64,000 bases of DNA from Sphyrna mokarran. Lineage: Eukaryota. The stretch's first letter is position 1. Each line of letters begins with the position of its first letter. This document shows positions 16,259 to 55,980 of the stretch, piece after piece. Where the stretch lies: NCBI GenBank assembly GCA_024679065.1, contig JAGIQG010000004.1, positions 62,682,001 to 62,746,000 of the forward strand, in the 5' to 3' direction. The translations under genes and the position numbers were made by a program. Under the pieces are notes generated by a model. It was given only the letters and a program-made list of their open reading frames with translations. It was not told the DNA's origin and did no database searches.

Positions 16259-16264
16259 TTTATT
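16259..16264 (-). promoter_or_regulatory. Candidate polyadenylation signal AATAAA (second candidate 16076-16081)
   Basis: tttatt on the plus strand, ~25 nt downstream of the stop codon. Confidence 0.45.
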
Positions 16265-16289
16265 GCTCTGATACGAAATCATTTGTATA

Positions 16290-16451
16290 TTAAGTCCCTG
16301 TCGAAGCATGCCAATTTCTTTCATTCGGTTCTAATTTGATTGCAGCATAATCCGTACAATTCGCCTTCTGCTTCTGTATTCCCCTGTTAGCCGTACCAAT
16401 CGTACTTAGGGCTGCATAAGCCAAATTGCCATTCTCGCTTCTCTCCGGGAT
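16290..16451 (-). CDS. Exon 6: cytoplasmic tail with ITIM (LAYAAL, 16407-16424) and ITSM (TDYAAI, 16338-16355), TAA stop
   Basis: Acceptor tttttttttgtatatatttgtgtacag|ATC, 53 codons to TAA. Two canonical tyrosine motifs, with the Tyr residues 23 aa apart. Confidence 0.9.
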   Translation of the reverse strand: MPERSENGNLAYAALSTIGTANRGIQKQKANCTDYAAIKLEPNERNWHASTGT

Positions 16452-19400
16452 CTGTACACAAATATATACAAAAAAAAATCCAACACTAAATGATACCTTT
16501 TAGATAGATATGTTAAAAAAATACATGGACGTGCAGCCTTGTCTTCAAAATCTGACTTTGGATTTTTGAGTGAAAATGACATTGGAGTACAATTATTTGA
16601 TATCGCCGTACACAATATGCTATAATCAGGGAACTATGAATGATTATTTTCACATTTTGTACGTAAATAAAAATATGTCAAAGTGTTGTGCATCAAGGAA
16701 GAAATTGTCGTTTGGTTTCGCGCCTTCAATTCCAAGTGTATACTAGATGAACATAAGCAAGTTGAGCACGGAAAGGTCAAATAGCCCATGCGTCGATGTG
16801 TGTATTTCAAAATGCATAATCTGAACTACTAATTTAACCTTAATGCATAGTTTTCATCTTCATTCTCGCTTCCAATTAGGTACTTTCAATAAACTATTCG
16901 TATTAGGAGAAAATCCTTGTGTGTTCAAATCGCATTGTTGTGTTATTTCGTCATTCCTGATACACCTTATCCTTCAGAAAACAGGATAAATTTTACCAGG
17001 ATGGAAACGAAAGAGAATGATTAATTTCAACATTTCATTCATCTTCGAGTCAATTTGTTGATTTTGTGCAATCAAATTATGACGTTGTTAGAATCATTTT
17101 TGAATTAACCAATCTCCGTGGAAGTTGTAATTTCAGAGAATGCAATGCTGATGATATTCTGGGTGTATCACTAGCTATTAGTTTGTTGTTCTTTTTCCGT
17201 ACACTCGAGAATCAGACTCTGAGAATCCGTGATGAGGTTGTTTGTTTGCCATTCGTTAATTCTTATGCATTCATTATCCCTACTTCTTCCATCTTTTTTC
17301 ACTTTGCCCATTTCCAACGCATTTGAGGCCGGAATTTCACTTATCACATTTTTGCTCCCGTATGAGGTGAATGTGTTGAATTAGATAACTATTTTGGCCG
17401 AATGAATAATGCAGGGAACCCGAAAAAAAAAGCTATCAAAATAGGAAGGGTTGAAACAATTTCTTTTTTTTATCTCCTCTGGCAAAGATGCCACGAACAA
17501 TCATCTATCTTTTTTTATTATATGCTTGAATGTGGTTCAGTTATTCATAAATAATTCGTAATTTGCATATATATCACTGGAAGAGGTGGCAAATAATTTT
17601 AGAGTTTGGCACCTTTACAACTTTTTATCGTCTCGAAATTATTTCAAAACATGATTCGGCTGTCTTACCACTTCGAATACTGACACTTTTCACTCATACT
17701 TTAACATATTTCGTTGACCTTGTTCGGATTTTCAGGCTCCTGCAAAAAATATGTACCATTTCTACGCTCCGATTGGATTGCACCCATTCAATTTGCATGA
17801 TCATTGCAACAGGCAGATATAGTGTGGAAACATTGAAATTGAGTGACCACACGATGAGGCTGAACTTTATATTTTGCCTAATGACTTGATAAAGTGCAAC
17901 ATTCAGGTATTCTTATTCTTACATTTAACTTTTACTTAAATGATTGCATGATACTGCTCTTAATCACTCCATCGAGATGTATTTGTTATACTCTATTTCT
18001 GTGAAGAAAGACATTTAAACATTTCTCCCAAATTTATTTTTGTGGCTGCGAGTTTTTGGCCTTTTCTTGAGTCTTAACTTCATTTACATGAGTTTAATTG
18101 ATTTTCAACTAGTGTGCCAGGAATGCAGTGTTTCCATGTTTGTTTGTTTGTTTAAATAAACATTACTCTTTTAGAATCTACAGCATGAAAATAAAACCCT
18201 GTTGCAGAAAAAGAACGACACTCAGTCCATTATTAATTTCTTGCGAAAAAGGAAGGAAAATGCTTATTTTAAGTTGGCTTCCCAGCATGATTCCGTAACG
18301 GCAGATTCAGATCCTTGTACCTTTGAAAACATTGTCCATTTCAGCATTAAACGTCATCTCGCACAGTGAATTCCAAGGTGCCAGCACCAACTAGCTGAGA
18401 ACTGTTTCCTTCATGCCCCCTGCAATTCTATAATTATCACCTGAAAGCGTTCCTGAGTAATTGACATATCAGCTAAATCTTTTTTGTCGATGCTATCCTG
18501 CCCTCTCGTAATTTTATACGACTGAACTAAGTAACTGCTTGCTCTCCTTGGTTCTAAGGAAAATAGCTGCAGTTTAAATTTTTTCCTCATTGCATAAATA
18601 TTTATTTCCTAGAGCATTTATTGAAATATACTTTCCATACTCTCTGGGACCATTTCCTCTTGGTGTGTTTTGGAGATTAAAACGCTACCCAAAATTCCAT
18701 CTGAAACGAATCCACTGTTTGGGACTGTTCCAACATATATCCACCATAATTTATTGAATACATGAAAATATTCATTGTTTTTTTTGCCTATTCATCCACA
18801 TGTGCTACCAATTTTAGGGACCTATGAACATACACTCTAAGATCTCATATGTTGGCTCCCCTCCCCACCTCCCCCCCACCCCCCGTCAATATCCTCCCGC
18901 TTATTAAGTATCATAATGTTTTATTTGCCTTCTATTCTTACTCTGGTTGAATTCTATTCACCTATTTTCTGTCAACTTCACTTAACAATGGCTCGATGCT
19001 TCATGAAGGACGACATAGTCAATGTCCATGTAATCTTCAGAATATTCAATCCTGTAGAACATAGAACATTACAGCGCAGTACAGGCCCTTCGGCCCTCGA
19101 TGTTGCACCGGCCAGTGGACCCCCTAACCTAAACTATTCCAATATCATCCATATGCCTATCCACCGAACATTTGAATGTCCCCAAAGTAGGCGACTCCAC
19201 AACTGCTGCAGGCAGGGCATTCCACGCCCTCACCACCCTCTGGTAAAGAACGTGCCTCTGACATCCGTCCTTAATTTAATCCTTAATCCGTCCACCAACC
19301 TCTTAATTTAAAGTTATGTCCCCTCGTGTTGGTCATCACCATCCGAGGAAAAAGGCTCCCACCATCCACCCTATCCAGTCCTCTGATCATCTTATACGCC

Positions 19401-22400
19401 TCAATTAGGTCACCACGTAACCTTCTTCTCTCTAATGAAAATAACCTCAGGTCCCTCAGCCTTTCCTCATAAGGCCTTCCCACCATACCAGGCAACATCC
19501 TGGTAAACCTCCTCTGCACCCTTTCAAATGCTTCCACATCTTTCTTATAATGCGGCGACCAGAACTGTACGCAATACTCCAAGTGCAGCCGCACCAGAGT
19601 TTTGTACAGTTGTAACATAACCTCACGGCTCCTAAATTCAATCCCTCTACCAATAAAAGCTAACAAACCATACGCCTTCTTAACAACTTTATCAACCTGG
19701 GTGCCAACTTTCAAAGAGCTATGTACTTGTACCCCAAGATCCCTCTGCTCGACAACACTATTAAGGGTCCTTCCATTAGCCCTGTATTTCATATGCCTGT
19801 TATTCCTTTCAAAGTGAATCACCTCAGACTTATCCATATTGAATTCCATTTGCCACATCACGGCCCAGCTCTGCAACCTATCTATGTCCCTCTGCAAACT
19901 GTAACATCCATCCTCGCTGTCTACAACTCCCCCCACTTTGGTATCGTTAGCAAATTTACTAATCCAACCCTCTACACCCTCATTTAGGTCATTTATAAAA
20001 ATGACAAACAGCAGTGGCCCCAAAACAGATCCTTGAGGTACACCACTTGTAACTGCACTCCACGTTGAATATTTCCCATCAACGACCACCCTCTGTCTTC
20101 TATCAGCTAGCCAATTCCTAATCCAAACTGCTAAATCACCTTCAATCCCATGCATCTGCACTTTCTGCAGTAGGCTACCATGGGGAACCTTATCAAACGT
20201 TTTGCTAAAATCCATATACACTACATCAACTGTCTTACCCTTATCTATCTCTTTGGTCACCTCCTCAAAAAACTCAATAAGGTTTGTGAGGCACGTCCTA
20301 CCCTTCACAAAACCGTGCTGACTATCCCTAATCAATTTATTTCTCTGTAGATTCTTATAAATCCTATCCCTTATAATTCTTTCCAAGACTTTGCCCACAA
20401 CAAAAGGCAGGCTCACTGGTCTATAATTTCCAGGATGGTCCCTACTCCCCTTTTTGAACAAAGGGACAACATTTGCCATCCTCCAGTCTTCCAGCACTAT
20501 ATCTGTAGCCAACGACGACATGAAGATCAAAGCCAAAGGCTCTGAAATCTCCTCTCTAGCCTCCCAGAGAATCCTAGGGTAAATCCTATCTGGCCCAGGG
20601 GACTTATCAATTTTCATACCCTCAAGATTCGCTAACACCTCCTCCTTATGAACCTCAATCCTGCCCAGTCTACAAACTGGTATCACAGTCTTCTCCCCGA
20701 CAACGTTGTCTTTCTCCTGTGTGAATACTGACGAAAAATATTCATTCAGTGTCTCTCCTATCTCCTCAGGCTCCACGCACAACTTCCCACTGCTTTCTCT
20801 GACTGGCCGTAATCTTGCCCTAATCAACCTTTTATTATTTATATACCTGTAAAAAGCTTTAGGATTCTCCTTAATCCTATCCACCAAAGTCTTTTCGTGT
20901 CCTCTTCTAGCGCTTCTCAACTCCCTCTTTAGCTCCTTCCTGGCTAATTTATAGCTCTCCAGTGCCCTAGCTGAGCCTTCATGTCTCATCATTATATAAG
21001 CCTCCTTTTTCCTCTTCACCAGAGAGTCAACTTCCCCAGCACACCATGGTTCCCTCACTCGACCACTTCCTCCCTGCCTGGCGGGTACATATTTATTATA
21101 TTTCTTTAATTTCCTTAAATTATGTTCCTTAAATATGCTCCACATTTCAGATGTCCCCAGCCCCTGCAATATCCTGCTCCACCCTATGCATCCTAAATCT
21201 CTCCTAATAGCCCCATAATTACCTTTCCCCCAGCTATAACTACTGTTATTCAGTATGCGCCCATCCCTTTCCATCACTAAGGTAAACGTAACCGAATTGT
21301 GATCACTATCACCAAAGTGCTCACCCACCTCCAAGTCTAACACCTGGTCTGGTTCATTGCCCAGTACCAAATCAAATATAGCCTCACCACTTGTTGGCCT
21401 ATCTACATACTGAGTCATGAAACCTTCCTGCACACATTGAACAAAAACTGACCCCTCTAACGTACTTGAACTATAACTTTTCCAATTGATATTAAAAAAG
21501 TTAAAGTCCCCTATTATAACTACCCTGTTACTTTCACACCTATCCAGGATCAACTTTTCAATCCCTTCCTCTACTTCTCTGGAACTTTTTGGAGGCCTAT
21601 AAAAAACTCCCAACAGTGTGACCTCTCCTTTCTTGTTCCTAATCTCAGCCCACACTACCTCAGCAGACAAGTCCACATCAAACGTCTTTTCTGCCACTGT
21701 AATGCTGTCCTTAACTAACAATGCCATTCCTCCCCCTCTTCTACCACCACCACTGCTCTGACTGAAACATCTGAACCCCGGAAACTGCAACAACCATTCC
21801 TGCCCCTGCTCTATCCAGTCCCTGAAATAGCCACAACATCGAAGTCCCAAGCACCAATCTAGGTTGCAAGTTCATCCACCTTATTGCGTATGCTCCTCGC
21901 ATTAAAGTATACACACTTCAAACCACCCTCCCGTTTGCCACTATACTGCTGCGACCTAGAAACCTTATCCGTGACCTCCCTATTCACATCCTCCTGTATA
22001 CTGGCACACAAATTCAGGTTCCCATCCCTCCCCTGAATCAGTTTAAACCCCATCCGAATAGCACTGGCAAATTTACCCCCCAAGATATTGGTACCTCTCC
22101 AGTTCAGGTGCAGACCATCCCTCTTGTAGAGGTCCCACCTTCCCCAGAATGAGCCCCAATTGTCCAAATACCTGAACCCTTCCCGCCTGCACCATCCTTT
22201 TAGCCACGAGTTCAAATGTTCTCTCTCCCTATTCTTTTCTATGCTATCCCGCAGCACAGGTAACAAACCAGAGATAACCACTCCGTTTGTTTTAGCCCTA
22301 AGTTTCCACCCTAACTCTCTGAATTTCTGCTTTATATCCCCATCCCTTTTCCTACCTACGTCATGGGTACCTACATGCACCACAACTTGGGGCTGGTTCC

Positions 22401-25400
22401 CCTCCCCCTTAAGGATCCCGAACACTCGGTCAGAGATAGAACATAGAACATAGAACATAGAACAATACAGCACAGAACAGGCCCTTCGGCCTTCGATGTT
22501 GTGCCGACCAAAATAAAAAAGCAATGCCCCTCCAAACTAAACCATTCCCTTCTCTTCCATATACTTATAAACTAACCTCTTAAACGCCACCAAACTTGGC
22601 GCATCTACAACTGCTGCAGGCAGGGCATTCCACTCCCGAACCACCCTTTGGGTAAAGAAACTACCTCTGATATCCATCCTATAACTATCACCCCTTAATT
22701 TAAAGCTGTGTCCCCTCGTGCTAGCTTTCTCCATCCTAGGAAAAAGGCTATCACTGTCCACCCGATCTAAACGTCTAATCATCTTTTATGTTTCGATCAG
22801 ATCCCCTCTTAGCCGCCTCCTTTCTAATGAAAACAACCTCAAATCCCTCAGCCTCTCTTCATAAGGCCTGCCATCCATACCAGGCAACATCCTGGTAAAC
22901 CTCCTATGTACCCTGTACAATGTCTCCACATCTTTCTTATAATGTGGGGACCAGAACGGCACACAATACTCCAAGTGCGGCCACACTAGAGTTTTGTACA
23001 ATTGCAACATGATGTTACAGCTCCGAAATTCAAACCCCCTACCAATAAAAGCTAAGACTCCATATGCCTTCTTAACAACCTTATCGACTTGACTGCCTAC
23101 TTTCAGGGATCTATGCACAAATACACCAAGATCCCTCGGTTCATCAACACTATTAAGAATCCTACCATTAGCCCTATACTCTACACATTTATTATTCCTG
23201 CCATAGTGCATTACCTCACACTTTTCCACATTAAACTCCATTTGCCACCTCTCGGCCCAGCTCTGCAACTTGGCCAAGTCCCTCTGCAAACTATAACACC
23301 CCTCTTCACTATCTACCACTCCACCGACTTTCGTGTCATCTGCAAATTTACTAATCCATCCTTCAATACCCTCATCCAGATCATTTATAAAAATTACAAA
23401 CAGCAGGGGCCCCAAAAACAGATCCCTGAGGTACACCACTAGTAACCGAACTCCACGATGAATATCTCCCATCAACCACCACCCTCTGTCTTCTATCTGC
23501 TAGCCAATTCCGAATCCAATTAGCTAAATCACCCTCTATCCCATACATCTGCATTTTCTGCAGAAGCCTTCCATGGGACACCTTATCGAACGCCTTACTA
23601 AAGTCCATATGTACCACATCAACCGCCTTACCCCCATCCACCTCTTTGGTCACTTTTTCAAAAAACTCAATAAGGTTAGTAAGGCATGACCTACCCTTCA
23701 CCAAACCATGCTGACTATCCCCAATCAATTCATTTCTCTCTAAATAACTATAAATCCTATCCCTAATACTTCTCTCCAATACTTTGCCCACAACAGAAGT
23801 AATACTCACTGGCCTATAATTCCTTGGAAGATCTCTCTTCCCCTTCTTGAACAATGGGACCACATTTGCTATCCTCCAGTCCTCCGGAACCACACCCGTA
23901 ACCAATGACGACCTGAAGATCAGAGCCAGAGGCTCTGCAATCGCCTCTCTTGCCTCCCAGAGAATCCTAGGATAAATCCCGTCTGGCCCAGGGGACTTAT
24001 CCAACTTCAAACCCTCAAGAATATCTAGCACATCCTCCCTATCTACTTCAATACTTTCCAGTTTGCAACCCTGTACCTCAGTGTTCTCCATAAGTACATT
24101 TACATCACCCTGCGTGAATACCAAAGAGAAATATTTATTCAGTGCCTTTCCAATCTCTTCAGGCTCCACGCACAACTTCCCACCGCTGTCTGTGACTGGC
24201 CCTAATTTTGTCCTAACCAATCTTCTATTCTTAACATATCTAAAAAAAGGATTAAGGAGAATCCTAAAGCTTTCTTTCGATATGTTAAGAATAGAAGATT
24301 GGTTAGGGCAAGATTAGGGCCAGTCATAGACAGCAGTGGGAAGTTGTGCGTGGAGCTGAAGAGATTGGTGAGGCACTGAATAAATATTTCTCTTCGGTAT
24401 TCACGCAGAGTGCTGGAAATGTAGCTATGGAGATCACTGAGGTACAGGGTTGCAAATTGGGGAGTATTGTAGTAGATAGGGAGGATGTGTTAGAAATTCT
24501 CGAGGGTTTGAAGTTGGATAAGTCCCCTGGGCCGGACGGGATTTACCCTAGGATTCTCTGGGAGGCAACAGAGGAGATTGCAGAGCCTCTGGCTCTGATC
24601 TTCAGGTCCTCGTTGGTTACGGGTGTGGTTCCGGAGGACTGGAGGATAGCGAATGTGGTCCCATTGTTTAAGAAGGGGAAGAGAGACCTTCCAGGGAATT
24701 ATAGGCCAGTGAGTCTTACTTCTGTTGTGGGCAAAGTATTGGAGAGAATTATTAGGGATAGGATTTATAGTTATTTAGAGAGAAATGAATTGATTGGGGA
24801 TAGTCAGCATGGTTTCGTGAAGGGTAGGTCATGCCTTACTAACCTCATTGAGTTTTTTGAGAAAGTGACCAGAGACGTGGATGGGGGTAAGGCGGTTGAT
24901 GTAGTATATATGGACTTTAGTAAGGCGTTTGATAAGGTGGCCCATGGAAGACTTCTACAGAAAATGCAGATGTGTGGAATAGAGGGTGATTTAGCTAATT
25001 GGATTAGGAATTGGCTGGCAGATAGAAGACAGAGGGTGGTGGTTGATGGGAGATATTCATCGTGGAGTTCGGTGACGAGTGGTGTGCCTCAGGGGTCTGT
25101 TTTGGGGCCCCTGCTGTTTGTAATTTTTATAAATGATCTGGATGAGGGTATTGAGGGATGGATCAGTAAATTTGCAGATGACACTAAAGTCGGTGGAGTG
25201 GTAGATAGTGAAGAGGGGTGTTATAGTTTACAGAGTGACTTGGACAAGTTGCAGAGCTGGGCCGAGAGGTGGCAAATGGAGTTTAATGTGGAAAAGTGTG
25301 AGGTAATGCACTTTGGCAGGAACAATAAATGTGTAGAGTATAGGGCTAATGGTAGGGCTCTTAATAGTGTTGAGGAACAGAAGGATCTTGGAGTATGTGT

Positions 25401-28400
25401 CAATAGATCCCTGAAAGTAGGCAGTCAAGTGGATAAAGTTGTTAAGAAGGCATATGGAGTCTTAGCTTTTATTGGTAGGGGGATTGAATTTAGGAGCCGC
25501 AGCATCATGTTGCAACTGTACAAAACTCTAGTGCGGCCGCACTTGGAGTATTGTGTGCAGTTCTGGTCCCACATTATAAGAAAGATGTGGAGGCATTGGA
25601 GAGGGTACAGAGGAGGTTTACCAGGATGTTGCCTGGTATGGAGGGCAGGTCCTATGAAGAGAGGTTGAAGGATTTGAGTTGTTTTCGTTAGAAAGGAGGC
25701 GGCTAAGAGGGGATCTTATTGAAGCATATAAGATGATTAGAGGTTTAGATAGGGTGGACAGTGATAGCCTTTTTCCTAGGATGGAGAAAGCTAGCACGAG
25801 GGGACACAGCTTTAAATTAAGGGGTATGAGTTATAGGACGGATATCAGAGGTAGGTTCTTTACTCAAAGAGTGATTAGGGAGTGGAATGCCCTGCCTGCA
25901 GCTGTTGTAGATGCGCCAAGTTTGGTGGCGTTTAAGAGGTTAATTGATAAGTATTGGAAGAGAAGGGAATGGTTTAGTTTGGAGGGGCATTGCTTTTTAT
26001 TTTGGTCGGCACAACATCGAAGGCCGAAGGGCCTGTTCTGTGCTGTAATGTTCTATGTTCTATGTTCTAAAGAAAGCTTTAGGATTCTCCTTAATCCTAT
26101 CAGCCAAAGTCTTCTCATGTCCCCTCTTAGGTCTCCTCAATTCACTCTTTAGCTCCCTCCTGGCTAATCTATAGCTGTCCATTGCACTAACTGAGCCTTC
26201 AAGCCTCATCCTGACATAAGCCGCCTTTTTCCTTTTAACCAGCAAATCAACGTTTTTCGTACACCAAGGTTCCCTTACTCGACCATTTCCTCCTTGCCTG
26301 ACAGGGACATACTTATCAAGGACTCAGATCAGCTGCTCCTTCAATAAGCTCCACATTCCAGATGCTCGCAGTCCCTGTAGTTTCCTAGTCCAATCTATGC
26401 ACCCTAATTCTCTCCTGATTGCCTCATAATTACCCTTCCCCCAGCTATGACTACTTCCCCCAGCTTCATGCCTATCCCTATCCATCACTAAGTTGAACGT
26501 AACCGAATTGTGGTCACTATCACCAAAATGTTCACTAACTTCCAAGCCTAACACCTGGTCTGGCTCATTGCCCAGCACCAAATCCAATGTAGCCTCACCT
26601 CTAGTTGGCCTATCTGCATACTGAGTCATAAAACCTTCCTGCACACTTTGTACGAAAACTGACCCCTCTAACGAGCTAGAGCTATAGCTATTCCAATCAA
26701 TATTAGTAAAGTTAAAGTCCCCCATAACAATTACCCTATTACTTTCACTCCTGACCAGAATTGACTTTGCAATCCTTTCCTCAACCTCTCTAGAACTTTT
26801 AGGAGGTCTATAAAAGACTCCCAACAGGGTGACCTCTCCTCTCCTGTTTCTAATCTCAGCCCATACTACCTCAACAGACAAGTCCTCATCAAACTTCTTT
26901 TCTGCCACTGTGATAGAGTCTTTGACTAATAATGCCACTGCTTCCCCCCTTCTACCTCCTTCTCTACTCCGACTAAAGCTATCACTGACCCCAGCGCCTG
27001 GGAGGCAACATACCAACCGCGAGTCCCGCTCCTTCCCACAGACTCTCCTATCTATCCCCTTAACTAGGGAGTCCCCAATCACTAATCCAGATCTTTCTCC
27101 CCCTTCCCACCTGAGCATCAAGGACAGGCTCAACTCCCGAGACCTGTACTCCATGGCTTACCCCGGTTGTATCTTCATCCCCAACAGCATCCAAAGCAGA
27201 GTACTTATTACGTAGAGGAACAGCCTCAGGGGAACTCTGCACTGACTGCTTCTTACCCCTTCTAACAGTCACCCATGTATCACATTTAGGAGTAACTATC
27301 TCCCTGTAGCTTTTATCAGTAGCCATTTCTGCTTTCCTAATAATTCTTAGTTTCTCCAGTTCCAGCTCCAGGTCCCTAACACGGTCCTCAAGGAGGTGGA
27401 ACTGGATGCACCTCTGGCAGGTGTAATGAGCTGGGACACTACCAGTGTCCCTCACCTCAAAAATCCCACAGGAGGTACATCGCACTGCCTGCACTGCCAT
27501 CCCTATTACTTCCTTTACACTGAAACAAATATAAACTTAAACTTACCTGCTCACACTCCTAGTCGCTCTCCTTTTTTTATTAGGTTAGAGGAGTGGGGAG
27601 GATTGGGATACTCTACACGTGTAGAGCATTAGGATTCTTCACCTTCCCAATTTATGGAATGTATCTACATTCATCTAGGACCCAATATTGCGCCTCCTGG
27701 ATTGCCACTAGGAATTACGCTCCAGATACAGGTATGTTGTTTCATCATTACAATTTTTCATTCTTGCTGAGCCAATTTTTGAATAAATGGTCACTGTTTT
27801 CCTCATGCAAGCCGGTTACTTTTCTTATTGGTCTGAAATGTTAGACCCCGTCAAATGACTGCACTAATATACACTGCCTCAGAAACACTCCTTGTTACTA
27901 GCTCAAGCAATGGGTTAATTTGATAAGGTGTAAAAGCTATTGCCTGTCCCTTATAGACAGTTGCCTTTAGAAATGATATTCCATCCTTTTTCTCATAAAC
28001 TAAGGGTAATAGTTTGGCAAACGCCAAATTCTGATTGATCTATAAGGATGGTCAAAGAGTGAAATAAATATGATAGTCTTAATTTAGCAGTTATAGGTGA
28101 GAATTAGAAAATTTAAAAGTGATTATGATAATCTTGTTTACGATCAATTTAAGTTAAATGAATAATGAAATAAAGCTTAGAATTAGGTTCAGAAAAAATG
28201 GAATTTTGACCTGATGATGTCCATTTACTCCGCTTTTTTTTAAAAAAAACAAATAGAGAGTTAACATATTTTGTCCCAGACAGAGTACATTTTTAAGTTT
28301 TAAGATTTTGCAGCAGATTTAAGACATTCCAGAATTCATTAGTCGATGATAAATATAGTAAATGCATTAGCTTGTATCAAAATCTAGCATGGGGATAGAA

Positions 28401-40400: not shown

Positions 40401-43400
40401 GACAGGTGATCTTAAACTAATATTTGTCATCAGTATTTGCTGTTGAGAAAAACATGAATATTAGGGAATTTGGGAAATAAAAGTGATGTCTCGAGGAGTG
40501 TACATATTAGGGAGAAAGAGATGCTGGATATCTGAAAGAGCATCAAGATAGATAAATCCCCAGGGCCTGGTGAAGTGTATCCCAGAACATAGCGGCAAGT
40601 CAGGGAAGAAATTGCTGGTCCTCTGGCAAAGATATTGAATCTGTCATAGCCACAGGTAAGGTGCCTGAAGATTGGACGGTGGAAAAGTTTTGACTTTCTT
40701 TAAAAAGGGCTGCAGGGAAAAGCCTGGGAACTATAGGCCAATGAGCTTCACAACTGTGGTGGGTAAGTTGTTTGAAGGTATTTTGAGGTCAGGATCTACT
40801 GACATTTAGAGATGCAAGGATGGCTTTGTGAATGGAAAACCATGTCTCCAAAATGTGATTGAGTTTTTTTGAAGGGATAATCAAGATGAGGGCAGTGAAG
40901 TTTATGTTGTCTACATGGACTTTGGCAAAGACTTTGAGAAAGTACCACATGATATGCCGTTGCATAAAGCTAAGGATGAAGTAGCTAAATGGATACAAAA
41001 TTGGCTTGGTGGCATAAGCCAGAGGATGATTGTAGAGGGTTGTTTTTTCAAATTGGAGGCCTGCGAACAGCTGTGTGTCTCAGAGTTCCATACTGAATCC
41101 ACTGTCATTTGTCATTTATATTCATGCTTTGGATGAGAATATAAGAGAAATGGTTAGTAATTTTGCAGATGGCACCAAGATTGGACAGGGAAGAACGTTA
41201 TCTCATATTGCAATGGGATCTTAATCAATTGGCAAACGACTGATGAGTTTAATTGAGATAAATGCAAGGTAGTGCATTTTGGAAGACTGAACAGGGCTGG
41301 ACTTATTCAGTTAACGGTAGGCGTTGAGGAAAATTACAGACCAAAGACATCTAGGGGTACAAGTCCATAGCTCCCTGAAAGTGGAGTCATAGGTAGACAG
41401 AATGGTGAAATAGGCATTCAGCATGTTTGGTTTCATTGATCAGAACATTGAATATAGGAATTGGGACATTATGTTGAAGTTGTACAAGACACTGGTAAGG
41501 CTACACTTGGAATACTGTGTATAGTTCTGGCCATGGAATTATAGAAAATATTATTAAACAAAACAGAAGGCAGAAAATAAATGCTAGAGTGTTACTAGGA
41601 CTTGATGGTTTGAGTTATAAGGAGAGGTTGGATACACTGGGACTGTTTTCTCTGGAGTGTAGAATGCTGAGGGTGCTGTTATCGATGTATATAAAATAAT
41701 GAGGGACACAGGTCAATTAGATAGTTAACAGGGGTGTCTAAAACTAGAGGGCACAGGTTTAAGATGAGAGGAAAGAGATACAAAAGAGTCGAGTGGGGTA
41801 ATTTGTTCACATAAAGGCTGGTGAGTGCCTGGAACAAGCAGCCAGAAGTAATAGTAGAGACGGGTACAATTTTGTCTTTTAAAATCATTTGGACAGTTAA
41901 ATGGGTGAGATGGGTGTAGAGGGATATGGGCTAAATACTGGCAATTAGGGCTAGCTTAGAGTTTTAAAGAAAAAAGAGTGGCATGGACAAGTTGAATAGA
42001 AAGGCCTGTTTCCATGCTAGAAACCTCTATGACTCTATGAATCTATGACCAATAAGTTAATTAATGCTACAGTAGAGATAAATTGCACGTGCAGCCGTTT
42101 TTTAATAAAGTTTTAAAATTGTTGTTTATCTAGACGTTAGTTATGAATTCATGGTTCACTTCAGATCAATAGGTTTTAATTCTGATATTCATCAGATTAC
42201 AAAATATTAATTATAATGGATTACGTAGCTGTGTTCGCATCTATAAAATAAAGTAAGAAATATGGGCTCAATTCTAATGACATACATATTTGGAGAAACA
42301 TTGCATTGTAAATGGTTATATCTGGCTTATCAGTAATCACTAAACGTTACAAAGGAACAATTCAGTATCTGGATTACTTTACATTTCGCAAATGATGTAC
42401 CCTTGTATTGGCAATTTCCAGCATTCATTGTATTCAATAAGCCTCATTGATCAACATACTTTCTTATATCTATTGCATGCAACCGCCAACAGAATACCGT
42501 AATTTTCGAGACATATAAGATGATTAGAGGTTTAGATAGGGTGGACAGTGATAGCCTTTTTCCTAGGATGGAGAAAGCTAGCACGAGGGGACACAGCTTT
42601 AAATTAAGGGGTGATAGTTATAGGACGGATATCAGAGGTAGGTTCTTTACCCAAAGGGTGGTTCGGGAGTGGAATGCCCTGCCTGCAGCAGTTGTAGATG
42701 CGCCAAGTTTGGTGGCGTTTAAGAGGTTAGTTGATAAGTATATGGAAGAGAAGGGAATGGTTTAGTTTGGAGGGGCATTGCCTTTTATATTGGTCGGCGC
42801 AACATCGAAGGCCGAAGGGCCTGTTCTGTGCTGTAATGTTCTATAAATACAAAAACTGAGTTAGCGTTATCGTGCAATGTTTTCAGGAGCAAGTAGCGGC
42901 ATAAAGTGTTCTCTTAACCTTCCAGACTTCATATCCATGACGTTTTAATCCTGTTTTACATAAACATTGTTCTTAAGCAGAACATTATTTCTATGCAAAA
43001 TCAAATAACATTTCAAGTGATAGTTAGAAAATCCATCCGTTGGCATCTTACCTGGGTTAGAGCTAGATACCAGGTAAACAGATAATTTCGGAGCTTGAAG
43101 CGCCGTATGAGATACCAAACAAATGTAAGGCGTTCCTATCTGGATTGGCTGTGACATCTGCAAGATGCTGGAGGCTTCATAGAGACCTGATTCGTTCAAG
43201 CGCGTTGTTGTTTTTATTCCGGTTGTAATCCTGCTTCCATTTTTGTACCAGTGAAATGTAATAGCCGCCGGATAAAAGTCAACTGTTTTGCATTCAAGGT
43301 GAAGATAGATGTTTGAATTTTCATCAGACATTATCCGTTGTATCGTTGGTTCATGAGGAGAAGCTATATTGGGATTCAGGGATAATATTTCAGTGTTGAA

Positions 43401-46400
43401 TATTTAGTGGATTATCACAATTCATAACCTAATCGCATTCATATTGTTTCATTATTTTGGAGAACATTTTATATCATGGGACCTCTGCACCTTTTGAATT
43501 ACCTAAGAACAGTCATATTTAATCGACTTTTTTTAGAAGTCACAACCATCAGAACCAACATAGATTTTCTCATTTAATGAATCAACTTCAAGTGCATTTC
43601 GACTTGTTGAAACATTACAGTCTGTAAAGTACTCATTGCATAACAATGTCATAAATTAAGTGCTCGTCTGTTTAAACTTCTGAGAATTACGTTAGCAATG
43701 CTGTTCAAAATACTTGGCGAACTGCGCTTCAATTAGAACAACTTTGCGGAATAGTAGATGCCGCTCGAAAAAGGATACTGATTGATTGGCAGTGGGACTT
43801 ATTTTGCAGGTGAATTTAAGGGAGACAATTTCTCTTTTGGAACATTGTAAGCTTAGTGTAACAGAGATATCCTGAGGTGCTATCTTTACCATTATCTGCA
43901 TTACACTATCGCTAACATTTCCATCTTTTCTGTCACGTTAAAGGCGATGGCAGTTCTGCCGCAGAAAGGCCAACTTGAATTGACTTCACTCTCACCTCAT
44001 ACTGAAGTCTAGTAGAATAGTAATCTTATGCGTTGAGCCATCACTCCACTCAGGTCAATTGTTTAATAAAGAACGAAGAACAACTCAGCACAGGAGCAGG
44101 CCCTTCGGCCCTACAAGCCCGCGCCGCCCGTTTTAACACTCAGTGAGTGCATCATTCCAATCCTTCTTCTACCTATGACTTTTGTCTACATCTCAGGGAC
44201 TCCACAACAAAGGGGTACAAATTTAGAGAATTATATGTGCGCCACATTAAGGGAGATCAAATTTAGGGACAATTTATTAACACCAATCAGCCTAAAAACA
44301 CATTTTGGGGGTGTAGGAGGAAACTGGGGCAGCCTTAGAAAACCCACGCAAGCACGGAGGGAATGTGCAAACTCCCACAGACACCGACTCAAGTCGGAGA
44401 TCAGATCCGAGTCCCTGTGACTGCACAGCAAACAGTGATAGTCACGGGGCTGTCGTGTTGCCCGTCAATTGGTCTAGCTTAACCGTACACTAACGACGTG
44501 AAACACTAGGCAACTCCCGAAGCAACATCCAAGAGCAGCTCTCGCACGACCACCGCGTGTATGCCCTTTGTTGGCCAACAAGTCGGACCGAATCGCCTGT
44601 GGATGTAAAAGACAAATCAAACATACAACAGCTTATGGAGACATTCACGGAAGATCCCCAGTAGCTCCAACGTAAGAGACAGGTGAGCCATAAAGTATGC
44701 TGGACGACCCAGAGGAATCTGTTGATTCCCAGGGACTACTGAGGCTCTTGATCCTTAACTAGAGCATTCTTTTGTATCTCTCCATCGCTAGTCTATTCAT
44801 GTGCCTATCTAGGTAAGTCTTAAACAACTCTAGCGTGCCTGCCTCCACCACCTTGCTTGGTAGTGTATTCCACGCCCCGACAACCCTCTGTGTGGAAAAC
44901 CTCCCTCTAACATCTGAATCATACCTCGCCCCTCTCACCTTAAGCCCGTGATCCCTCGTGAATTTCACATCCAACCTGGGAAAAAGCTTCCCACTGTTCA
45001 CTCTATCTATACCCCTTATAATCTTATACACCTCTATTAGGTCTCCTCTCATTCTCCATCTTTCCAGGGAGAACAACCTCAATTTGCCCAATCTCTCCTC
45101 AATAATGGAATATTTCTGGAATCACACAACCGAACTGATTGTACTGAAGCACGTTGGGTAGTTTATCGCAAATAGAAGACTCATTCTCCGATTTTTGGCC
45201 ATACAGCTTTATGAAGAGTCCTCCCAAAATTGTCCCCATAATTACTTAGAAAATTTACCTCGAGTTCCATGAAATAAACAATGACTTACAAGTATTATTG
45301 TTAAATGAATGCCTTCACTGGATAACGTGAGGGATTAAATAGCGATTTACGGTAAACTAGAAAGGTAGGCCTGAGCAAAATAGCTCCTCCTAATTAAGTT
45401 TTAGTCAGAAAGTTCCTTACAGTTTATTAAGATTGAACCTTAAAATACTAATGCTATTTTTAAATTATAAGGTCACTATCCAAAAAATTTGATGCATTGA
45501 TAGTAAATGTTATTTTCAAGAGCGGCAGCATCCGAAAATACCATTTGAACGAGTTAGCATATGTGTACCTTCATTCGACCTCCTAAACATTAAATTTTAG
45601 GATTGTCAAAATGTATCAAATATGATAATATTCTGAATAACGTATATGCGAAAGAAATATTTGGGGGTATTCAAATTATATCGGCACAACTGGAGTCGAG
45701 CCTTATTACGCTATAAAATATGCCGCAATCTGCATAATTTGCCGGCTTTTCAGTAAAGAAAGTAATTTAACTAGATATATTGTTAAATTACACACACACA
45801 CACACACACATATATATAAGATATGATATTTTATACATATATAATATGAGGCACACAAACACACACATATATAATTATATACATATATACATACAATTAT
45901 ATTTCATGCATTGAAAATATTAGCTGACGTTTTGTATGTAGTGATAATTCAGAAATAGATAATTGAGGTGACAAAGGCCGAATGATCAATACATGCTTCA
46001 AAAGGACATGCCATCGTGCTTTTTTTATTTTCCATTTCTAAGGTGTGTATATAAACATGTTTGAAAGAGAATTCCAAAAATTCCTTCCGCGTCAATGACA
46101 CTTACCGTGGACAACAATTGTTGATCCAGTTCCGTTAGTCATTCCCGCTCTTCCTTTTTGGACACCGCAGCAATAAACCCCGGCGTCTTGGAAACGGACA
46201 TTAAGGAGTTGGAAGGAGCTTTCCCCTTTCCTGTGAAAAAAATGTTTCCGCCTGTCTGAGCCTGGTTGCATAAATACATCTTCGCCAAGTCTCCACCAGA
46301 AAACATTCACTTCTGAATTATCTGACAGAGGAATGAACGCACAAGCAATGGTAATATTTTCACCGATCTTAACAATCATGTGTCCGGGACTTTGCGACAC

Positions 46401-46612
46401 CTGGGACTGGGTATAGCAAATAACTTCTAAAGAGAGAGGGGGAAAAAATAAACAAACACATTATCAATCAATTCAACATTTCAGATGTAAATTGCAGTGT
46501 TTCATAGTGATGTTGGAATACATATAAATAAAAATGGAAACAAAATGCAGCGGATACCTGTCATGATCGTCACCAAGGTAAGTCTGCTCTGAAGAACAGC
46601 GAAAACATTCAT
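16290..46612 (-). CDS. Six-exon IgSF type-I receptor gene (leader-VJ-C1-TM-ITIM/ITSM), 330 aa; join(46558..46612,46106..46426,43052..43363,31897..32007,31486..31517,16290..16451)
   Basis: Exon lengths 55+321+312+111+32+162=993 nt, one open frame, all introns GT..AG, phases 1,1,1,1,0. Translation: [330 protein letters not shown]. Confidence 0.85.
22437..26979 (-). mobile_element. CR1 'B', 5'-truncated, inserted in A and itself interrupted at 24249/26066
   Basis: Own (TTCTATG)n tail at 22437. ORF2 fragments 22537-24220 and 26060-26979 join at KENPKAF(F)RYVKNRR. Confidence 0.92.
24250..26069 (+). mobile_element. CR1 'C', 5'-truncated, inserted in B in opposite orientation
   Basis: 440-aa RT ORF, 3' tail ending at 26069, approximate TSD tctaaa(a/g)aaag at 24239-24249 and 26066-26076. 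Confidence 0.95.
27611..27626. promoter_or_regulatory. Palindromic E-box CTCTACACGTGTAGAG in the CR1 A 5'UTR
   Basis: Perfect 16-bp palindrome. A homologous palindrome ACTTCACGTGAAGT lies at 58688-58701 in another CR1 5'UTR. Confidence 0.6.
29460..29624 (+). mobile_element. 3' end of the (TTCTTTG)n-tailed SINE/LINE family
   Basis: ggaacatcggggtggcggcgtgggctcgttgggcc...ttgttctttgttctttg, matching the reverse complement of 1756-1850. Confidence 0.7.
31486..31517 (-). CDS. Exon 5: short cytoplasmic linker ([11 protein letters not shown])
   Basis: Acceptor ttttcaatgcattgtgacag|CT, donor ACG|gtatgt. Converts phase 1 to phase 0, as needed to join exon 4 to exon 6. Confidence 0.8.
31897..32007 (-). 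CDS. Exon 4: transmembrane domain
   Basis: Acceptor ttaatcttgcag|AT, donor AAAG|gtaaga, phase 1-1. Encodes [37 protein letters not shown] (23 uncharged residues followed by basic residues). Confidence 0.9.
32170..32320 (+). repeat. Inverted partial duplicate of REX1 segment 33126-33276
   Basis: aaaccacagaccacagtcagtaaggatagacaac...aaattcccctccaact matches the reverse complement of 33126-33276. Confidence 0.85.
32330..33362 (-). mobile_element. REX1/Babar-type LINE RT fragment
   Basis: [60 protein letters not shown] motifs typical of REX1-clade RT. Confidence 0.85.
33626..33948 (+). mobile_element. V-SINE (HE1-like), standalone copy of the family found in the chimeras
   Basis: Head gggcaccatgacagctc, V core gcgtgggttttctccgggcactccggtttcctcccac, tail gggccgaagggcctgtttcccgtgctg. 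Confidence 0.85.
35940..36160 (-). repeat. Unclassified dispersed repeat; inverted homologue at 43740-43965
   Basis: Shared blocks gattg(t/a)ttggcagt, aatttctcttttgg(t)aacattgtaagctta, ttacactatcgc, aaaggc(a/g)at(a/g)gcagttctgcc. Confidence 0.75.
36310..37850 (-). mobile_element. Old degenerate CR1 with an inserted V-SINE (+; ~37100-37380)
   Basis: [29 protein letters not shown] (degenerate [15 protein letters not shown]). Confidence 0.65.
37855..39275 (+). mobile_element. V-SINE interrupted by two head-to-tail CR1 3' fragments (-; 38082-38470 and 38471-39181)
   Basis: tRNA head and V core at 37855-38081. The SINE tail resumes at ~39200 (gactaggtcattttcagagtaatttcattgcagcgctaatgtaagcct). 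Two separate TTCTATG tails. Confidence 0.85.
40040..42050 (+). mobile_element. Old degenerate CR1 ORF2 with (CTATGA)n tail
   Basis: [36 protein letters not shown] remnants. Confidence 0.85.
42508..42844 (+). mobile_element. Young CR1 3' end
   Basis: 81-aa ORF2 C-terminus identical in translation to 38567-38812. Confidence 0.95.
43052..43363 (-). CDS. Exon 3: Ig C1-set domain
   Basis: Acceptor aatatag|CT, donor CCAG|gtaaga. C1 hallmarks [31 protein letters not shown]. Confidence 0.93.
43740..43965 (+). repeat. Unclassified dispersed repeat; homologue of 35940-36160
   Basis: Same shared blocks as 35940-36160, in the opposite orientation. Confidence 0.75.
44068..45104 (-). mobile_element. Chimeric CR1 ORF2 end + long 3'UTR + V-SINE, copy 2
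   Basis: ORF 44759-45091 ([18 protein letters not shown]...WNTLP) followed by linker, V-SINE core and TTCTT-type tail. Confidence 0.85.
45790..45900. repeat. (CA)n/(TA)n microsatellite
   Basis: acacacacacacacacacacatatatata... Confidence 0.9.
46106..46426 (-). CDS. Exon 2: Ig V-set domain with fused J-like G strand
   Basis: Acceptor ccctctctctttag|AA, donor CACG|gtaagt. V motifs: QVSQSP, B-strand Cys (ITIAC), FWW, DAGVYCC, J-like NGTGSTIVV. Confidence 0.93.
46558..46612 (-). CDS. Exon 1: signal peptide ([18 protein letters not shown])
   Basis: ATG at 46612, hydrophobic stretch, phase-1 donor ACAG|gtatcc, 131-nt intron to the V exon (typical Ig leader layout). The donor is non-optimal, so this is the least certain exon. 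Confidence 0.65.
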
Positions 46613-47269
46613 ATTGAACAAAAAATAACGGTCTTCTGCGAAAAAAAAACTCCGGAGAATTTATTGCGGCAACGCCGCAATGACCTGTTGTAAAGTAGGA
46701 AATGACGACCTGATATCGCACGTTTGCAAGTGCTGCGTAATGAAAACGTTCTTGAATTCAATTTGTGATTGTTCCTTTGAATTTTGAATGTTTTAAAACA
46801 TTGCGAACAGAATCATTATTATTAAGCAAAACAAACATTGCACCGATGTGCCGATGTTTGGATATCGGTTAAATCTATGTTGGATTTTAACGCGGCTGGA
46901 TAAAATGGCTGTGCTAGACAAATCTTAAGGTTTTTCTTGGACTAATATTGACTGTTCAAAACAACAGCAACAACAAAATCTTTCAGAAGGACGTGATGCC
47001 AATCACCGCAATTAAAAAAAGAGAAAATAGTGTAAATTGCAGAAATATGACACCCAGCTTTGTCGTACATGTTTTGTTTTCACTTTAAATCCGCTGCTAG
47101 AATAACACTTATGCGAGTTGGCTTGTATTTAATTACTAGACATTTTGGAGTAATTTAAGTTTACTGCGTTTGAGATCTGTTTGCTCCACTTAATTCATTT
47201 TGTATTTTGCCCGTGGAATAAAACTTAAAAACGCATTCAGTTAATTCATCTTATCATCTGACGGTGGAA

Positions 47270-55369: not shown

Positions 55370-55980
55370 TGTGCGTCCGTGGATCGGTCCAGCCCTAGTT
55401 GACATTCAGAAGGTGGCTGTGAGTTGTCTTCTTGAACCATTCCAGCAACTATGAAGGAAAGGTGAACGGCTTTGAAGTCAGAATTGTGACTGACTTGGGA
55501 GCGGAACAACAAGGTTTTTGTTACCCTTGATGGTAAAGGTCGTTAGTCTGGACTGTGCCACCAAAGGACCCGTGTTGACGACCTGCAGGGCATCTTGAAG
55601 ATCGTACACGCTGCTGTCACTGTTTGTCAGTTGCGAGTGGTTTGAGCGTTTGTGTAACGGTTAGCAATCAAGCTGCTTGCTTTATCCTGGCTAGCGCAAG
55701 GTTTCTTGAGTTTTATTGAAGTAATACTCATCCAAGCAAGTGGAGAATATTCCACTATTGTCTTGCTTAATGGCTTGTATATGATGGACATGTTTGAGGT
55801 GTCGTGAGTTAATTAACTCGCTGCAGGGTTCCCAGGCGTTGTTCTGTACTGGTAGTCACAATACATACATGACGGGTCGAGTTCAGTTTCTCGTCAACGG
55901 TAAACGCCAAGATATTGCTGTTGTGGCCCAAAGTGGTGCATTCATTTTTTCGTTCATCTGGTTGAAGATCGTTGTAGACA
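55370..55980 (-). mobile_element. Degenerate non-LTR retrotransposon of a different CR1-group lineage (related remnants ~9070-9395 and ~34770-35080)
   Basis: Minus-strand EYSPLAWMS...KLKK...QDKASSLI, typical of an L2/Crack-like ORF2 C-terminus; exact clade uncertain. Confidence 0.55.

Follow-up and report, generated by a model that had tools for sequence, protein, structure and literature searches.

Few non-rearranging genes of the VJ-C1 type have been described, the known examples being SIRP, PRARP, UrIg and UrIg2. SIRPs, characterised by CD47 binding and by a tail that recruits SHP-1/2, have a V-C1-C1 ectodomain, and the tail of SIRP-alpha carries four tyrosines. PRARP genes, described by Fu and colleagues in 2019, are reportedly VJ-C1-TM genes that do not rearrange and that occur in birds, reptiles, amphibians and fishes. 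NKp30 (NCR3) consists of a single VJ Ig domain, a stalk, a transmembrane (TM) segment with an arginine and a short tail, and Kinlein and colleagues are said to have reported in 2021 eight divergent, MHC-linked NCR3 subtypes in the nurse shark. PRARP is cited among VJ genes elsewhere (PMC10751288; PMC11599192). In the excerpted text of PMC12227049, UrIg is a secreted protein with three C domains and UrIg2 has nine to eleven; both are single genes, and their descriptions in these excerpts give no ITIM/ITSM tail. The same excerpts state that NCR3 is linked to the MHC and that sharks possess germline-joined Ig light-chain (IgL) genes (PMC12227049).

The window analysed here, a stretch of 64,000 nucleotides from the shark Sphyrna mokarran (GCA_024679065.1, contig JAGIQG010000004.1), is confirmed to encode a type I membrane receptor, by a single intact gene on its minus strand. 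This is probably a shark VJ-C1 receptor gene of the inhibitory type, with orthologues shark-wide, that belongs to a paired family known so far only from chondrichthyans and would damp signalling through SHP-type phosphatases.

Gene structure and splicing

The coding sequence comprises 993 nt (330 aa) in six exons on the minus strand, and is free of stops and frameshifts. All introns are GT-AG, the exon-end phases are 1,1,1,1,0 and the ten splice sites are intact. The features of the gene are as follows.

46558..46612, minus strand: leader exon, 55 nt, ATG at 46612-46610, phase 1 end, donor GT at 46557-46556
46427..46557, minus strand: leader intron, 131 nt, interrupting the signal peptide
46106..46426, minus strand: 321-nt V(J) exon, both ends in phase 1, encoding the canonical Cys, WW, DxGxYxC and a J-like strand
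46110..46136, minus strand: J-like G strand NGTGSTIVV, that is, FGxGTxLxV with Phe replaced by Asn
43052..43363, minus strand: 312-nt C1-set exon, both ends in phase 1, encoding FYP...W...YxCxVxH
31897..32007, minus strand: 111-nt TM exon, both ends in phase 1, encoding a connecting peptide, an uncharged TM segment (22 residues, letters not shown) and a juxtamembrane stretch
31486..31517, minus strand: cytoplasmic micro-exon, 32 nt, encoding (A) and 10 further residues (letters not shown), phase 1 in, phase 0 out
16290..16451, minus strand: last coding exon, with ITIM and ITSM; stop TAA at 16292-16290
16259..16264, minus strand: possible polyadenylation signal AATAAA, 26 nt past the stop

The six phase-compatible GT-AG exons proposed by the first-pass annotation are borne out by the splice/phase table and by a RefSeq model from Mustelus asterias (P0002, 335 aa) that matches all six in order at 69-89% identity; the ends proposed for the gene, 16290 and 46612, are exact. 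Identity to P0002 is 72% over 18 aa for the leader exon and the Mustelus N-terminus (E 0.067), 83% over 114 aa for the V exon (E 2.5e-61), 89% for the C1 exon (E 3.2e-57), 84% for the TM exon (E 7.4e-15), 69% over 16 aa for the micro-exon (tblastn, E 0.001 with a short query) and 83% over 46 aa for the tail exon (E 9.8e-20). The ordered TM, micro-exon and tail matches to this one protein agree with the original assignment of the TM and tail exons to the same gene. The TM exon is the top hydrophobic candidate in phase 1 (KD 2.75); an alternative in-frame acceptor would start it at 32028, and orthologues favour the 32007 acceptor. A split signal peptide is also typical of Ig/TCR V genes and of many other IgSF genes.

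When every six-frame ORF piece of at least 30 aa in the window is scanned with a family profile (see below), exactly four pieces match. Following the order of the gene, they are V (157 bits), C1 (148), TM (29.9) and tail (19.8). The scan reveals no second C1 exon, and the window contains no other gene. The introns between the C1 and TM exons and between the micro-exon and the tail exon, of 11 and 15 kb, are full of LINEs. The LINE fragments recognised in the window are the following:

19283..27500, both strands: LINE fragments in the last intron, with APE endonuclease and reverse transcriptase ORFs
38275-39199, 42520-42765 and 44759-45091: further LINE fragments, from the ORF list

These were initially called CR1 repeats, and their endonuclease and reverse transcriptase domains uphold them as LINEs (Pfam RVT_1, E 9e-30 and 1.5e-37; Exo_endo_phos, 3e-10). 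The depth of read contigs is very high over 44043-45185.

Splicing of V to C1 is seen in contigs from a relative. The joint 43363->46106 (minus strand, GT..AG, 2742 nt skipped) connects the two exons at exactly the predicted boundaries in one contig each of X19 and X20, probable RNA runs that are taken as RNA by guess only and come from a species other than the source; it is absent from the DNA-like runs X3 and X5. The X19 and X20 contigs lie on 46106-46324 of the V exon and cover the C1 exon, and depth in these runs is zero in unique intron bins. Given this doubt over the nature of both runs, and their origin in another species, the joint could formally derive from a retrocopy in DNA. Reads cover this junction only, the other four being represented by canonical splice sites and predicted orthologue models. 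The spliced transcripts that the first-pass annotation called for are thus probably represented for the V-C1 junction in the relative; the runs with the V exon include none of RNA from the source organism. The 19 differences listed between the C1 exon and the relative's transcript comprise 9 synonymous and 10 nonsynonymous changes.

Domains and signalling motifs

The C1 exon is recognised by Pfam C1-set (E 2.5e-12, 47.4 bits, cut-off 21), as had been read from its motifs. The V exon matches Pfam Ig_3 (E 9e-9) and lies above the V-set cut-off (29.4 bits against 26), so its designation as a V domain stands in that respect; the domain is nevertheless short, with 58 residues separating its two cysteines, and I-set scores it about as well. 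Translation places the J-like strand inside the V exon, which in the contigs of the relative's probable RNA runs splices straight to C1. An RSS-like heptamer/nonamer pair is absent from 45900-46650, as is an exact CACAGTG or CACTGTG. The J-like strand is therefore built in, as first supposed, and the RSS and separate J of a rearranging Ig/TCR V gene are lacking. The substitution of Asn for Phe creates an N-x-T sequon, and N115, G116 and G118 of the strand are nearly invariant or invariant in an alignment of 30 family members.

The tail has the expected order of motifs, an ITIM (LAYAAL, 16424-16407) followed by an ITSM (TDYAAI, 16355-16338) with their tyrosines 23 residues apart. They conform to (S/I/V/L)xYxx(I/V/L) and TxYxx(V/I), and both are retained in 7/7 orthologues that possess a tail.

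The encoded receptor consists of a signal peptide divided between two exons, a short V domain that is joined in the germline and ends in the J-like G strand, one C1-set domain, an uncharged TM helix and a tail of ~70 residues in which the ITSM lies 23 residues after the ITIM. We only infer inhibitory signalling, ligand binding and the cell type of the receptor. The V domain may bind ligand, Src-family kinases would phosphorylate both tail tyrosines, and phosphatases of the SHP-1/SHP-2 type would then dock on the tail through their tandem SH2 domains and damp cell activation.

A multigene family of cartilaginous fishes

The V tree and the C1 tree alike group the gene with Mustelus (SH-aLRT 96 and 98), inside a clade of ten orthogroup rows from squalomorph and galeomorph sharks (SH-aLRT again 96 and 98) whose branching follows the species tree. 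The same tail is retained in seven shark genera, and the orthologue models likewise have a single C1. The gene had been called hidden, which is true of this genome only, because RefSeq already contains models of its orthologues from other sharks.

Beyond this orthogroup, the gene is a member of a large, clustered and unnamed multigene family of non-rearranging VJ-C1 receptors. We define the family operationally by a V domain with WW(K/R)xGE and NGTG(S/T)xLxV, a C1 domain with FYP..W..GLYE.SS..Y.C.VSH, and placement of V and C1 exons each in the same clade. The window gene conforms in the 30-member alignment, in its profile scores (157 and 148 bits) and in the V and C1 trees. With the V exon as query, a set of 1.84 billion representatives yielded 281 matches at E<=1e-3. 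Each of the 25 family-type proteins that were looked up by name is chondrichthyan and none (0/25) comes from a bony vertebrate, so far limiting the family to sharks, rays and chimaeras within the best 150 matches of one V search, most of them unnamed, and 30 name look-ups. The trees, the profile and these names bear out the earlier suggestion of a cartilaginous-fish receptor family. Within each of seven species, the members looked up lie on contigs of equal size.

ITIM/ITSM tails occur in 28 of 66 V-C1 proteins, a count that includes isoforms and near-identical rows. A further 11 lack these motifs and have a basic residue in the TM; the rest comprise 10 with another kind of TM and 17 partial sequences. 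The coexistence of ITIM/ITSM members with short-tailed basic-TM members implies a paired inhibitory/activating layout. V-only isoforms or members also occur (e.g., P0078, P0088 and P0108). Automated pipelines label family members inconsistently, as IgL-like, SIRP-like, tapasin-related-like, NCR3LG1-like (B7-H6-like), CD276 or PTPNS1-like; the first-pass annotation had expected one of the first two labels for this gene.

Sharks, rays and chimaeras would therefore keep a whole clustered family in minimal two-domain membrane-bound form, its VJ-C1 members bearing either a tail of inhibitory type or a TM like that of activating receptors, which genome annotation spreads over five or more unrelated names. 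The conserved, shark-wide ITIM-ITSM member is a candidate ancient checkpoint-type receptor, and should also be a useful outgroup for phylogenies of antigen-receptor V and C1 domains. The full-text literature searched contains no description of the family; should literature beyond that search already describe it, the value of the present finding would be reduced to correct annotation.

Alternative readings

It is extremely improbable that the open frame in this species marks a copy that is silent or degenerating, or a germline-joined light-chain V-C1 mislinked to unrelated TM and tail exons. The lack of a source-organism run among those with the V exon could be read in this way, as could the LINE-filled 11- and 15-kb introns that precede the TM and tail exons, and germline-joined IgL genes are known in sharks (PMC12227049, as excerpted). 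However, 993 nt without stop or frameshift and ten intact splice sites argue against a silent copy. Mislinking is opposed by the TM, micro-exon and tail matches to the same Mustelus protein in order, by a tail of identical type across seven shark genera, and by the relative's C1 contig, which continues 14 letters past the donor and does not enter the intron.

With an intact receptor gene accepted, the question becomes one of kinship. Among solved V-C1 modules, those of Ig light chains, of SIRP-alpha and of shark UrIg2 come closest to the family. Were the gene a cartilaginous-fish SIRP branch, co-orthologous to tetrapod SIRP-alpha/beta/gamma, its kind would already be known and domain number would be the sole difference. 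SIRP-like and SIRP-alpha are the nearest named Atlas clusters (0.96), SIRP-alpha (2wng_A) stands in 8th place among the 9662 solved chains matched by the family profile (115.6 bits, the V-C1 stretch aligning colinearly from profile 24-215 to chain 3-205), SIRP-gamma scores 103.6 bits, NCBI names many family members PTPNS1-like, and both groups have paired inhibitory and basic-TM members. We nonetheless consider this unlikely: the gene has one C1 exon rather than two, as do the orthologue models, and two tail tyrosines against the four of SIRP-alpha; 0/25 named family-type proteins are from bony vertebrates (most of the 150 V matches being unnamed), and Ig light chains score about equally per V-C stretch, at 75-76 bits. 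Membership of the published shark NCR3 (NKp30) family, by which the gene would not be new, is distinctly improbable. The J-like strand with its N-glycan sequon resembles that of NKp30, the V-only forms in the family fit this reading, and the excerpts of PMC12227049 list nurse-shark NCR3 genes (MT914154-914161), but human NKp30 does not appear within the best 60 solved matches, whether the V exon or the V profile is used, and no Ginglymostoma protein is among the word-index matches for the family. In the excerpts of PMC12227049 and of PMC10751288, NCR3 is treated as a VJ-domain gene and UrIg is presented as the VJ-C1 novelty. There is very little probability that the gene is a shark orthologue of PRARP genes. 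Their architecture, as described from bony vertebrates, is reportedly the same (signal peptide, VJ, C1, TM and tail), yet bony vertebrates supply none of the 25 named family-type proteins.

Comparison with known receptor systems

Seen as an inhibitory-type member of a chondrichthyan VJ-C1 family, the window gene shares partial likenesses with several systems. Like SIRPs, it is a type I membrane receptor with a non-rearranging V domain that has a J-like strand and precedes a C1-set domain, and its family mixes ITIM-bearing inhibitory and basic-TM members. It differs from the three-domain V-C1-C1 layout in having one C1 exon between V and TM, in its ITIM plus ITSM with two tyrosines, and in the invariant N-glycan sequon of the family's J strand. 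NKp30/NCR3, which does not rearrange and is multigene in sharks, likewise has a GxG strand in its germline VJ domain, whereas the window gene has a C1 exon, an uncharged TM and an ITIM+ITSM tail.

UrIg and UrIg2 resemble the gene in their single-exon VJ, split leader, C1-type domains, lack of RSS and occurrence in cartilaginous fish (PMC12227049, as excerpted), and UrIg2 (9dmx_A) is 3rd of 9662 for the family profile, with 58.2 bits for its V-C1 stretch. The VJ and split leader of UrIg are present here, followed by one C domain only and not by at least three C1-type domains. The best single V-C stretches are lambda and kappa chains (76 and 74.9 bits), so that per stretch Ig light chains reach 75-76 bits against 58 for UrIg2, and the best solved matches of the C1 exon are Ig constant domains. 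Ig light and TCR chains also share V-J-C1 order, phase-1 exons and a split leader; unlike them, the gene has no RSS or separate J, possesses its own TM and signalling tail, and has a short V that lacks the usual C'' region and carries Asn for the J Phe. A wider reading, in our judgement rather improbable, would make the VJ-C1-TM family, and not UrIg/UrIg2, the closest surviving relative of the two-domain membrane chain split by the RAG transposon. A chain of pre-RAG type would then persist in cartilaginous fish as a germline paired (inhibitory/activating) recognition system, sister to Ig light/TCR chains and not to SIRPs.

At motif level only, the tail is like those of PD-1 and BTLA, in which an ITSM follows the ITIM by ~23-25 residues; the PD-1 tyrosines are Y223 and Y248 (PMC7078208, as excerpted). 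The ectodomains of PD-1 and BTLA differ in being V or I only, without C1. At the level of the family, the paired inhibitory/activating layout resembles that of SIRP, KIR or NITR.

Gene structure and predicted product

A single receptor gene occupies 16290-46612 on the minus strand of the window, and its six exons, read from the sequence and checked by script, are as follows.

Exons of the VJ-C1-TM receptor gene
46612-46558, minus strand, leader exon, 55 nt
46426-46106, minus strand, V exon, 321 nt
43363-43052, minus strand, C1 exon, 312 nt
32007-31897, minus strand, TM exon, 111 nt
31517-31486, minus strand, micro-exon, 32 nt
16451-16290, minus strand, tail exon, 162 nt including the stop codon TAA

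The script check finds GT..AG at the ends of all five introns (131, 2742, 11044, 379 and 15034 nt), exon-end phases of 1, 1, 1, 1 and 0, and a coding sequence of 993 nt (330 codons and the stop) that is in frame throughout. This bears out the six phase-compatible GT-AG exons of the first-pass annotation, whose end coordinates (16290 and 46612) match the model exactly. Two Ig-like long ORFs are visible in the window ORF list (46092-46400 and 42945-43331), and a candidate polyadenylation signal, AATAAA, lies 26 nt downstream of the stop.

The TM exon is the top candidate (KD 2.75) in a scan for phase-1 exons with a hydrophobic stretch. The first hydrophobic candidate, near 29325, was rejected because its frame requires phase 2 whereas the C1 exon ends in phase 1, and another near 41596 has neither a usable donor nor homologue support. 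The TM acceptor at 32007 is backed by P0002, the 335-aa RefSeq orthologue from Mustelus asterias, and by other orthologues; it is preferred to an acceptor at 32028 which, although in frame, adds seven residues absent from all orthologues. This second AG, which precedes the TM exon by 21 nt, would insert ATFINLA in the stalk (32008-32028) and could give a minor alternative splice form. The micro-exon was located only through homologue comparison (tblastn with P0002). At 16282-16320 the last ~10 codons are frameshifted relative to the Mustelus orthologue: the open frame ends in 10 residues of its own, then stop, and the other frame, of 13 residues, resembles RNLAFFGRDLIYK of P0002. The frameshift probably leaves the ITIM and ITSM unaffected, because it falls after the ITSM.

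The encoded protein has a signal peptide split by a phase-1 intron, a V domain that includes a J-like strand, a single C1 domain, a TM free of charged residues, and a tail in which an ITIM precedes an ITSM. The C1 exon matches Pfam C1-set (E 2.5e-12, 47.4 bits, cut-off 21), and the V exon matches Ig_3 (9e-9), ig, V-set (29.4 bits, cut-off 26) and I-set (25.4 bits, cut-off 23.7), so that both domains, for which a HMMER check had been proposed, score above their Pfam cut-offs. The V domain, with cysteines 58 residues apart, WW past the first cysteine, and DAGVYCC followed by NGTGSTIVV, is short and ambiguous between V-set and I-set. NGTGSTIVV corresponds to the J motif FGxGTxLxV with Asn replacing Phe, which creates an N-x-T sequon. 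Neither an RSS-like heptamer/spacer/nonamer nor an exact heptamer occurs in 45900-46650. The tail reads NLAYAAL (ITIM), 22 residues, then CTDYAAI (ITSM), with tyrosines 23 residues apart. The J-like G-x-G strand within the V exon, the lack of an RSS and the ITIM plus ITSM in the last exon had all been claimed from the sequence, and all three stand.

When a family profile built from 30 homologues is run on all six-frame ORF pieces of at least 30 aa in the window, it matches exactly four, in minus-strand order: V (157 bits), C1 (148), TM (29.9) and tail (19.8). The window therefore holds one gene of the family with a single C1 exon; neither a second C1 exon nor a second such gene is found there by this profile, and per-exon tblastn agrees. 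Weak tblastn matches at 55558-55626 (E 0.23) and 55529-55561 (E 0.76) were set aside as noise, since the family profile finds nothing there. The introns contain fragments identified to LINE level, with APE-endonuclease and reverse-transcriptase domains; several copies of this kind lie in both orientations in the last intron (19283-27500), among them a near-full ORF of 855 aa at 19283-21850.

Orthologues and evolutionary history

An exhaustive HMMER search with the V exon over 1.84 billion representatives returns 281 proteins at E<=1e-3, of which 78 reach <=1e-10 and only 6 reach <=1e-30. Giant multi-Ig proteins, which score by summation, aside, the best match is P0002, which is 89% identical and carries the NCBI name 'immunoglobulin lambda-1 light chain-like [Mustelus asterias]'. 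Whole-protein searches used this natural orthologue or the family alignment A1 as query. In tblastn against the window, P0002 recovers all six exons in order.

Matches of P0002 to the window exons (tblastn)
Leader exon, 72% identity, E 0.067
V exon, 83% over 114 aa, E 2.5e-61
C1 exon, 89%, E 3.2e-57
TM exon, 84%, E 7.4e-15
Micro-exon, 69% over 16 aa, E 0.11 (0.001 with a short query)
Tail exon, 83%, E 9.8e-20

The automatic names of the other orthologues differ in nearly every species: tapasin-related-like (Heterodontus), SIRP-alpha-like (Rhincodon), CD276 homologue (Heptranchias), B7-H6-like (Stegostoma and Pristiophorus), IgL-like (Scyliorhinus) and uncharacterised (Chiloscyllium). The first-pass annotation had foreseen such mislabelling by pipelines, and the IgL-like, SIRP-alpha-like, tapasin-related-like, B7-H6-like and CD276 names confirm it.

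V and C1 columns were cut with the family profile and their trees built separately, the window exons being added separately to each (67 rows for V, 68 for C1; one of the 67 proteins, with less than 70% column fill, was left out of the V tree). The window exon pairs with Mustelus in both (SH-aLRT 96 for V, 98 for C1), and an identical set of 10 rows forms a clade in both (support 96 and 98). Within it Heptranchias, Pristiophorus, Heterodontus and three orectolobiforms branch in turn, followed by Scyliorhinus and by Mustelus with the window gene. This order, read from the drawn V tree and, in the C1 tree, along the path that leads to the window exon, agrees with the species tree. Because the same clade and the species-tree order recur in both trees, the V and C1 exons have shared their evolution as parts of one old gene. 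In all seven tail-bearing orthologues, ITIM and ITSM are both retained.

Transcript evidence

The V exon was not found in runs on record as RNA of the source organism. Four sequencing runs were aligned to 42900-46700: X3 and X5, from two related organisms, and X19 and X20, from one further relative (~92% identical) and annotated only 'RNA? (a guess)'. X3 and X5 behave as DNA, since exons and introns are evenly covered at a depth of 5-7. X19 and X20 have zero depth in every unique intron bin of this region; their contigs lie on exactly 43052-43363 (from 43081 in X20) and 46106-46324, besides the repeats at 44043-45185. One contig each of X19 and X20 joins 43363 to 46106, skipping 2742 nt with 30 letters on the short side, and the joint has CT..AC ends on the plus strand, equivalent to GT..AG on the gene strand. 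No such joint occurs in X3 or X5. An X19 contig also runs 14 letters beyond the C1 donor, not into the intron. The pattern in X19, a run whose RNA status is a guess, is that expected of a spliced V-C1(-next exon) transcript in the relative, although a retrocopy is a less likely source of the joint. With the spliced-transcript reading, the transcripts proposed to join these exons are found in part: the V-C1 joint, the one junction of the five covered by reads, appears in probable RNA runs of a relative, and RNA runs of the source organism lack the V exon. Of 19 C1-exon differences listed for X19/X20, 9 are synonymous and 10 nonsynonymous, a distribution that fits coding sequence under moderate constraint.

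The repeats of the V-C1 intron at 44043-45185 reach very high depth in X19/X20 and in the DNA-like runs, and are abundant, probably transcribed LINE/SINE-type elements.

Spread and tail types of the family

The family consensus is WWKxGE...GVYYCGV...NGTGSxLxV for V and PPTPL...FYP...TWYKN...GLYE.SS...YTC.VSH for C1. Three word-index searches give 9, 23 and 24 matches, almost all family members; the third, with its threshold relaxed to E 10, brought in one CEACAM-like protein. In three batches of family-type proteins whose source was looked up, 10/10, 5/5 and 10/10 are chondrichthyan, spanning sharks, rays and Callorhinchus, and these 25 of 25 uphold the cartilaginous-fish receptor family that had been proposed. 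Five other looked-up proteins are multi-Ig, four from reptiles and one from Heterodontus. Looked-up members share one contig size per species (Heptranchias 66.5 Mb, Heterodontus 99.65, S. canicula 198.8, Mobula hypostoma 80.6, Hypanus 85.9, Callorhinchus 18.1 and Mustelus 152.9), and multiple accessions returned for one species are close in number, which together points to family genes clustered within genomes.

Tails were counted in 66 V-C1 proteins, with isoforms counted and P0179, a long-branched lizard protein, left out. An ITIM and/or ITSM is present in 28 and another kind of TM in 10, while 17 are partial; the other 11 have no ITIM or ITSM but carry Arg or Lys in the TM, with tails of 5-19 residues in eight and of 33, 38 and 72 in the rest. 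A split of this kind characterises paired inhibitory/activating receptor families.

Predicted isoforms or close paralogues without C1 (V-TM-tail) are seen in Heterodontus (P0108/P0111) and Mobula (P0088/P0075), a layout like that of NKp30; they hint at skipping of the C1 exon, or at an origin of V-only genes from VJ-C1 genes. The next-best non-chondrichthyan V-exon matches, P0026, P0047, P0105 and P0136 from turtles, viper and lizard, are multi-Ig proteins 322-450 aa long, and all but one of them have a GNGT-type J-like strand and an ITIM tail. These four go by the names pIgR-like, otk-like and titin homologue, and may be another mislabelled receptor family.

Proposed mechanism

On engagement of a ligand by the V domain, the tail tyrosines would be phosphorylated, and a tandem-SH2 phosphatase would dock on the phosphorylated tail and inhibit activation. 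Inhibitory signalling is proposed because such tails behave in this way in established receptors. PD-1, with its ITIM at Y223 and its ITSM at Y248, binds SHP-2 (PMC7078208), and the 23 residues between the tyrosines of the window gene come near the 25 in PD-1. In VH/VL-type pairing the J Phe is buried; with the invariant Asn-Gly-Thr in its place, a glycan would sit at that position, and one may speculate that it blocks canonical V-V pairing.

Comparison with known receptors

The family profile has 9662 matches at E<=1e-10 among all solved chains, with V-C1-C2-C3 of UrIg2 (9dmx_A) at rank 3 (130.1 bits) and SIRP-alpha (2wng_A) at rank 8 (115.6 bits, profile 24-215 on chain 3-205); SIRP-gamma scores 103.6 bits. 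Over a single V-C stretch the scores are 76.0 bits for a lambda-containing chain, 74.9 for a kappa chain and 58.2 for UrIg2. Ig constant domains are the best solved matches of the C1 exon alone. Multi-domain I-set proteins top the V-only profile search by summation, and its best whole-domain matches are pIgR D5 (~58 bits), shark V-NAR (54.2), a TCR scFv (53.6) and CD79b (52.0); NKp30 and SIRP are absent from the best 60 solved matches of both V exon and V-only profile, and neither query shows a specific affinity. In the Atlas, the Rhincodon orthologue draws first two unnamed clusters that combine V-set and C1-set, then SIRP-like, SIRP-alpha and Ig-kappa-like clusters at 0.95-0.96, which serve as leads only.

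Architecture separates the window gene from four kinds of receptor. SIRP has two C1 domains where the window gene has one. NKp30 has a single Ig domain, a TM Arg and a short tail, whereas the window gene has a C1 domain, an uncharged TM and an ITIM-ITSM tail. Rearranging receptors require an RSS, and none lies near its V exon. UrIg and UrIg2 have three or more C domains (PMC12227049), in contrast to the single C domain here. In two papers UrIg and UrIg2 stand as the VJ-C1 genes of sharks, and NCR3 is presented as having a VJ domain (PMC12227049, PMC10751288); one of them assigns the white shark MHC to chromosome 19 (PMC10751288).

No description of a chondrichthyan VJ-C1-TM family with ITIM/ITSM tails was found in the full texts searched. 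The orthologues are already RefSeq models and the kind of molecule is known; the novelty lies in recognising the gene and the family around it. For this reason the window gene is classed as a SIRP/PRARP-type member of the non-rearranging VJ-C1 IgSF receptors, sharing the architecture described for PRARP.
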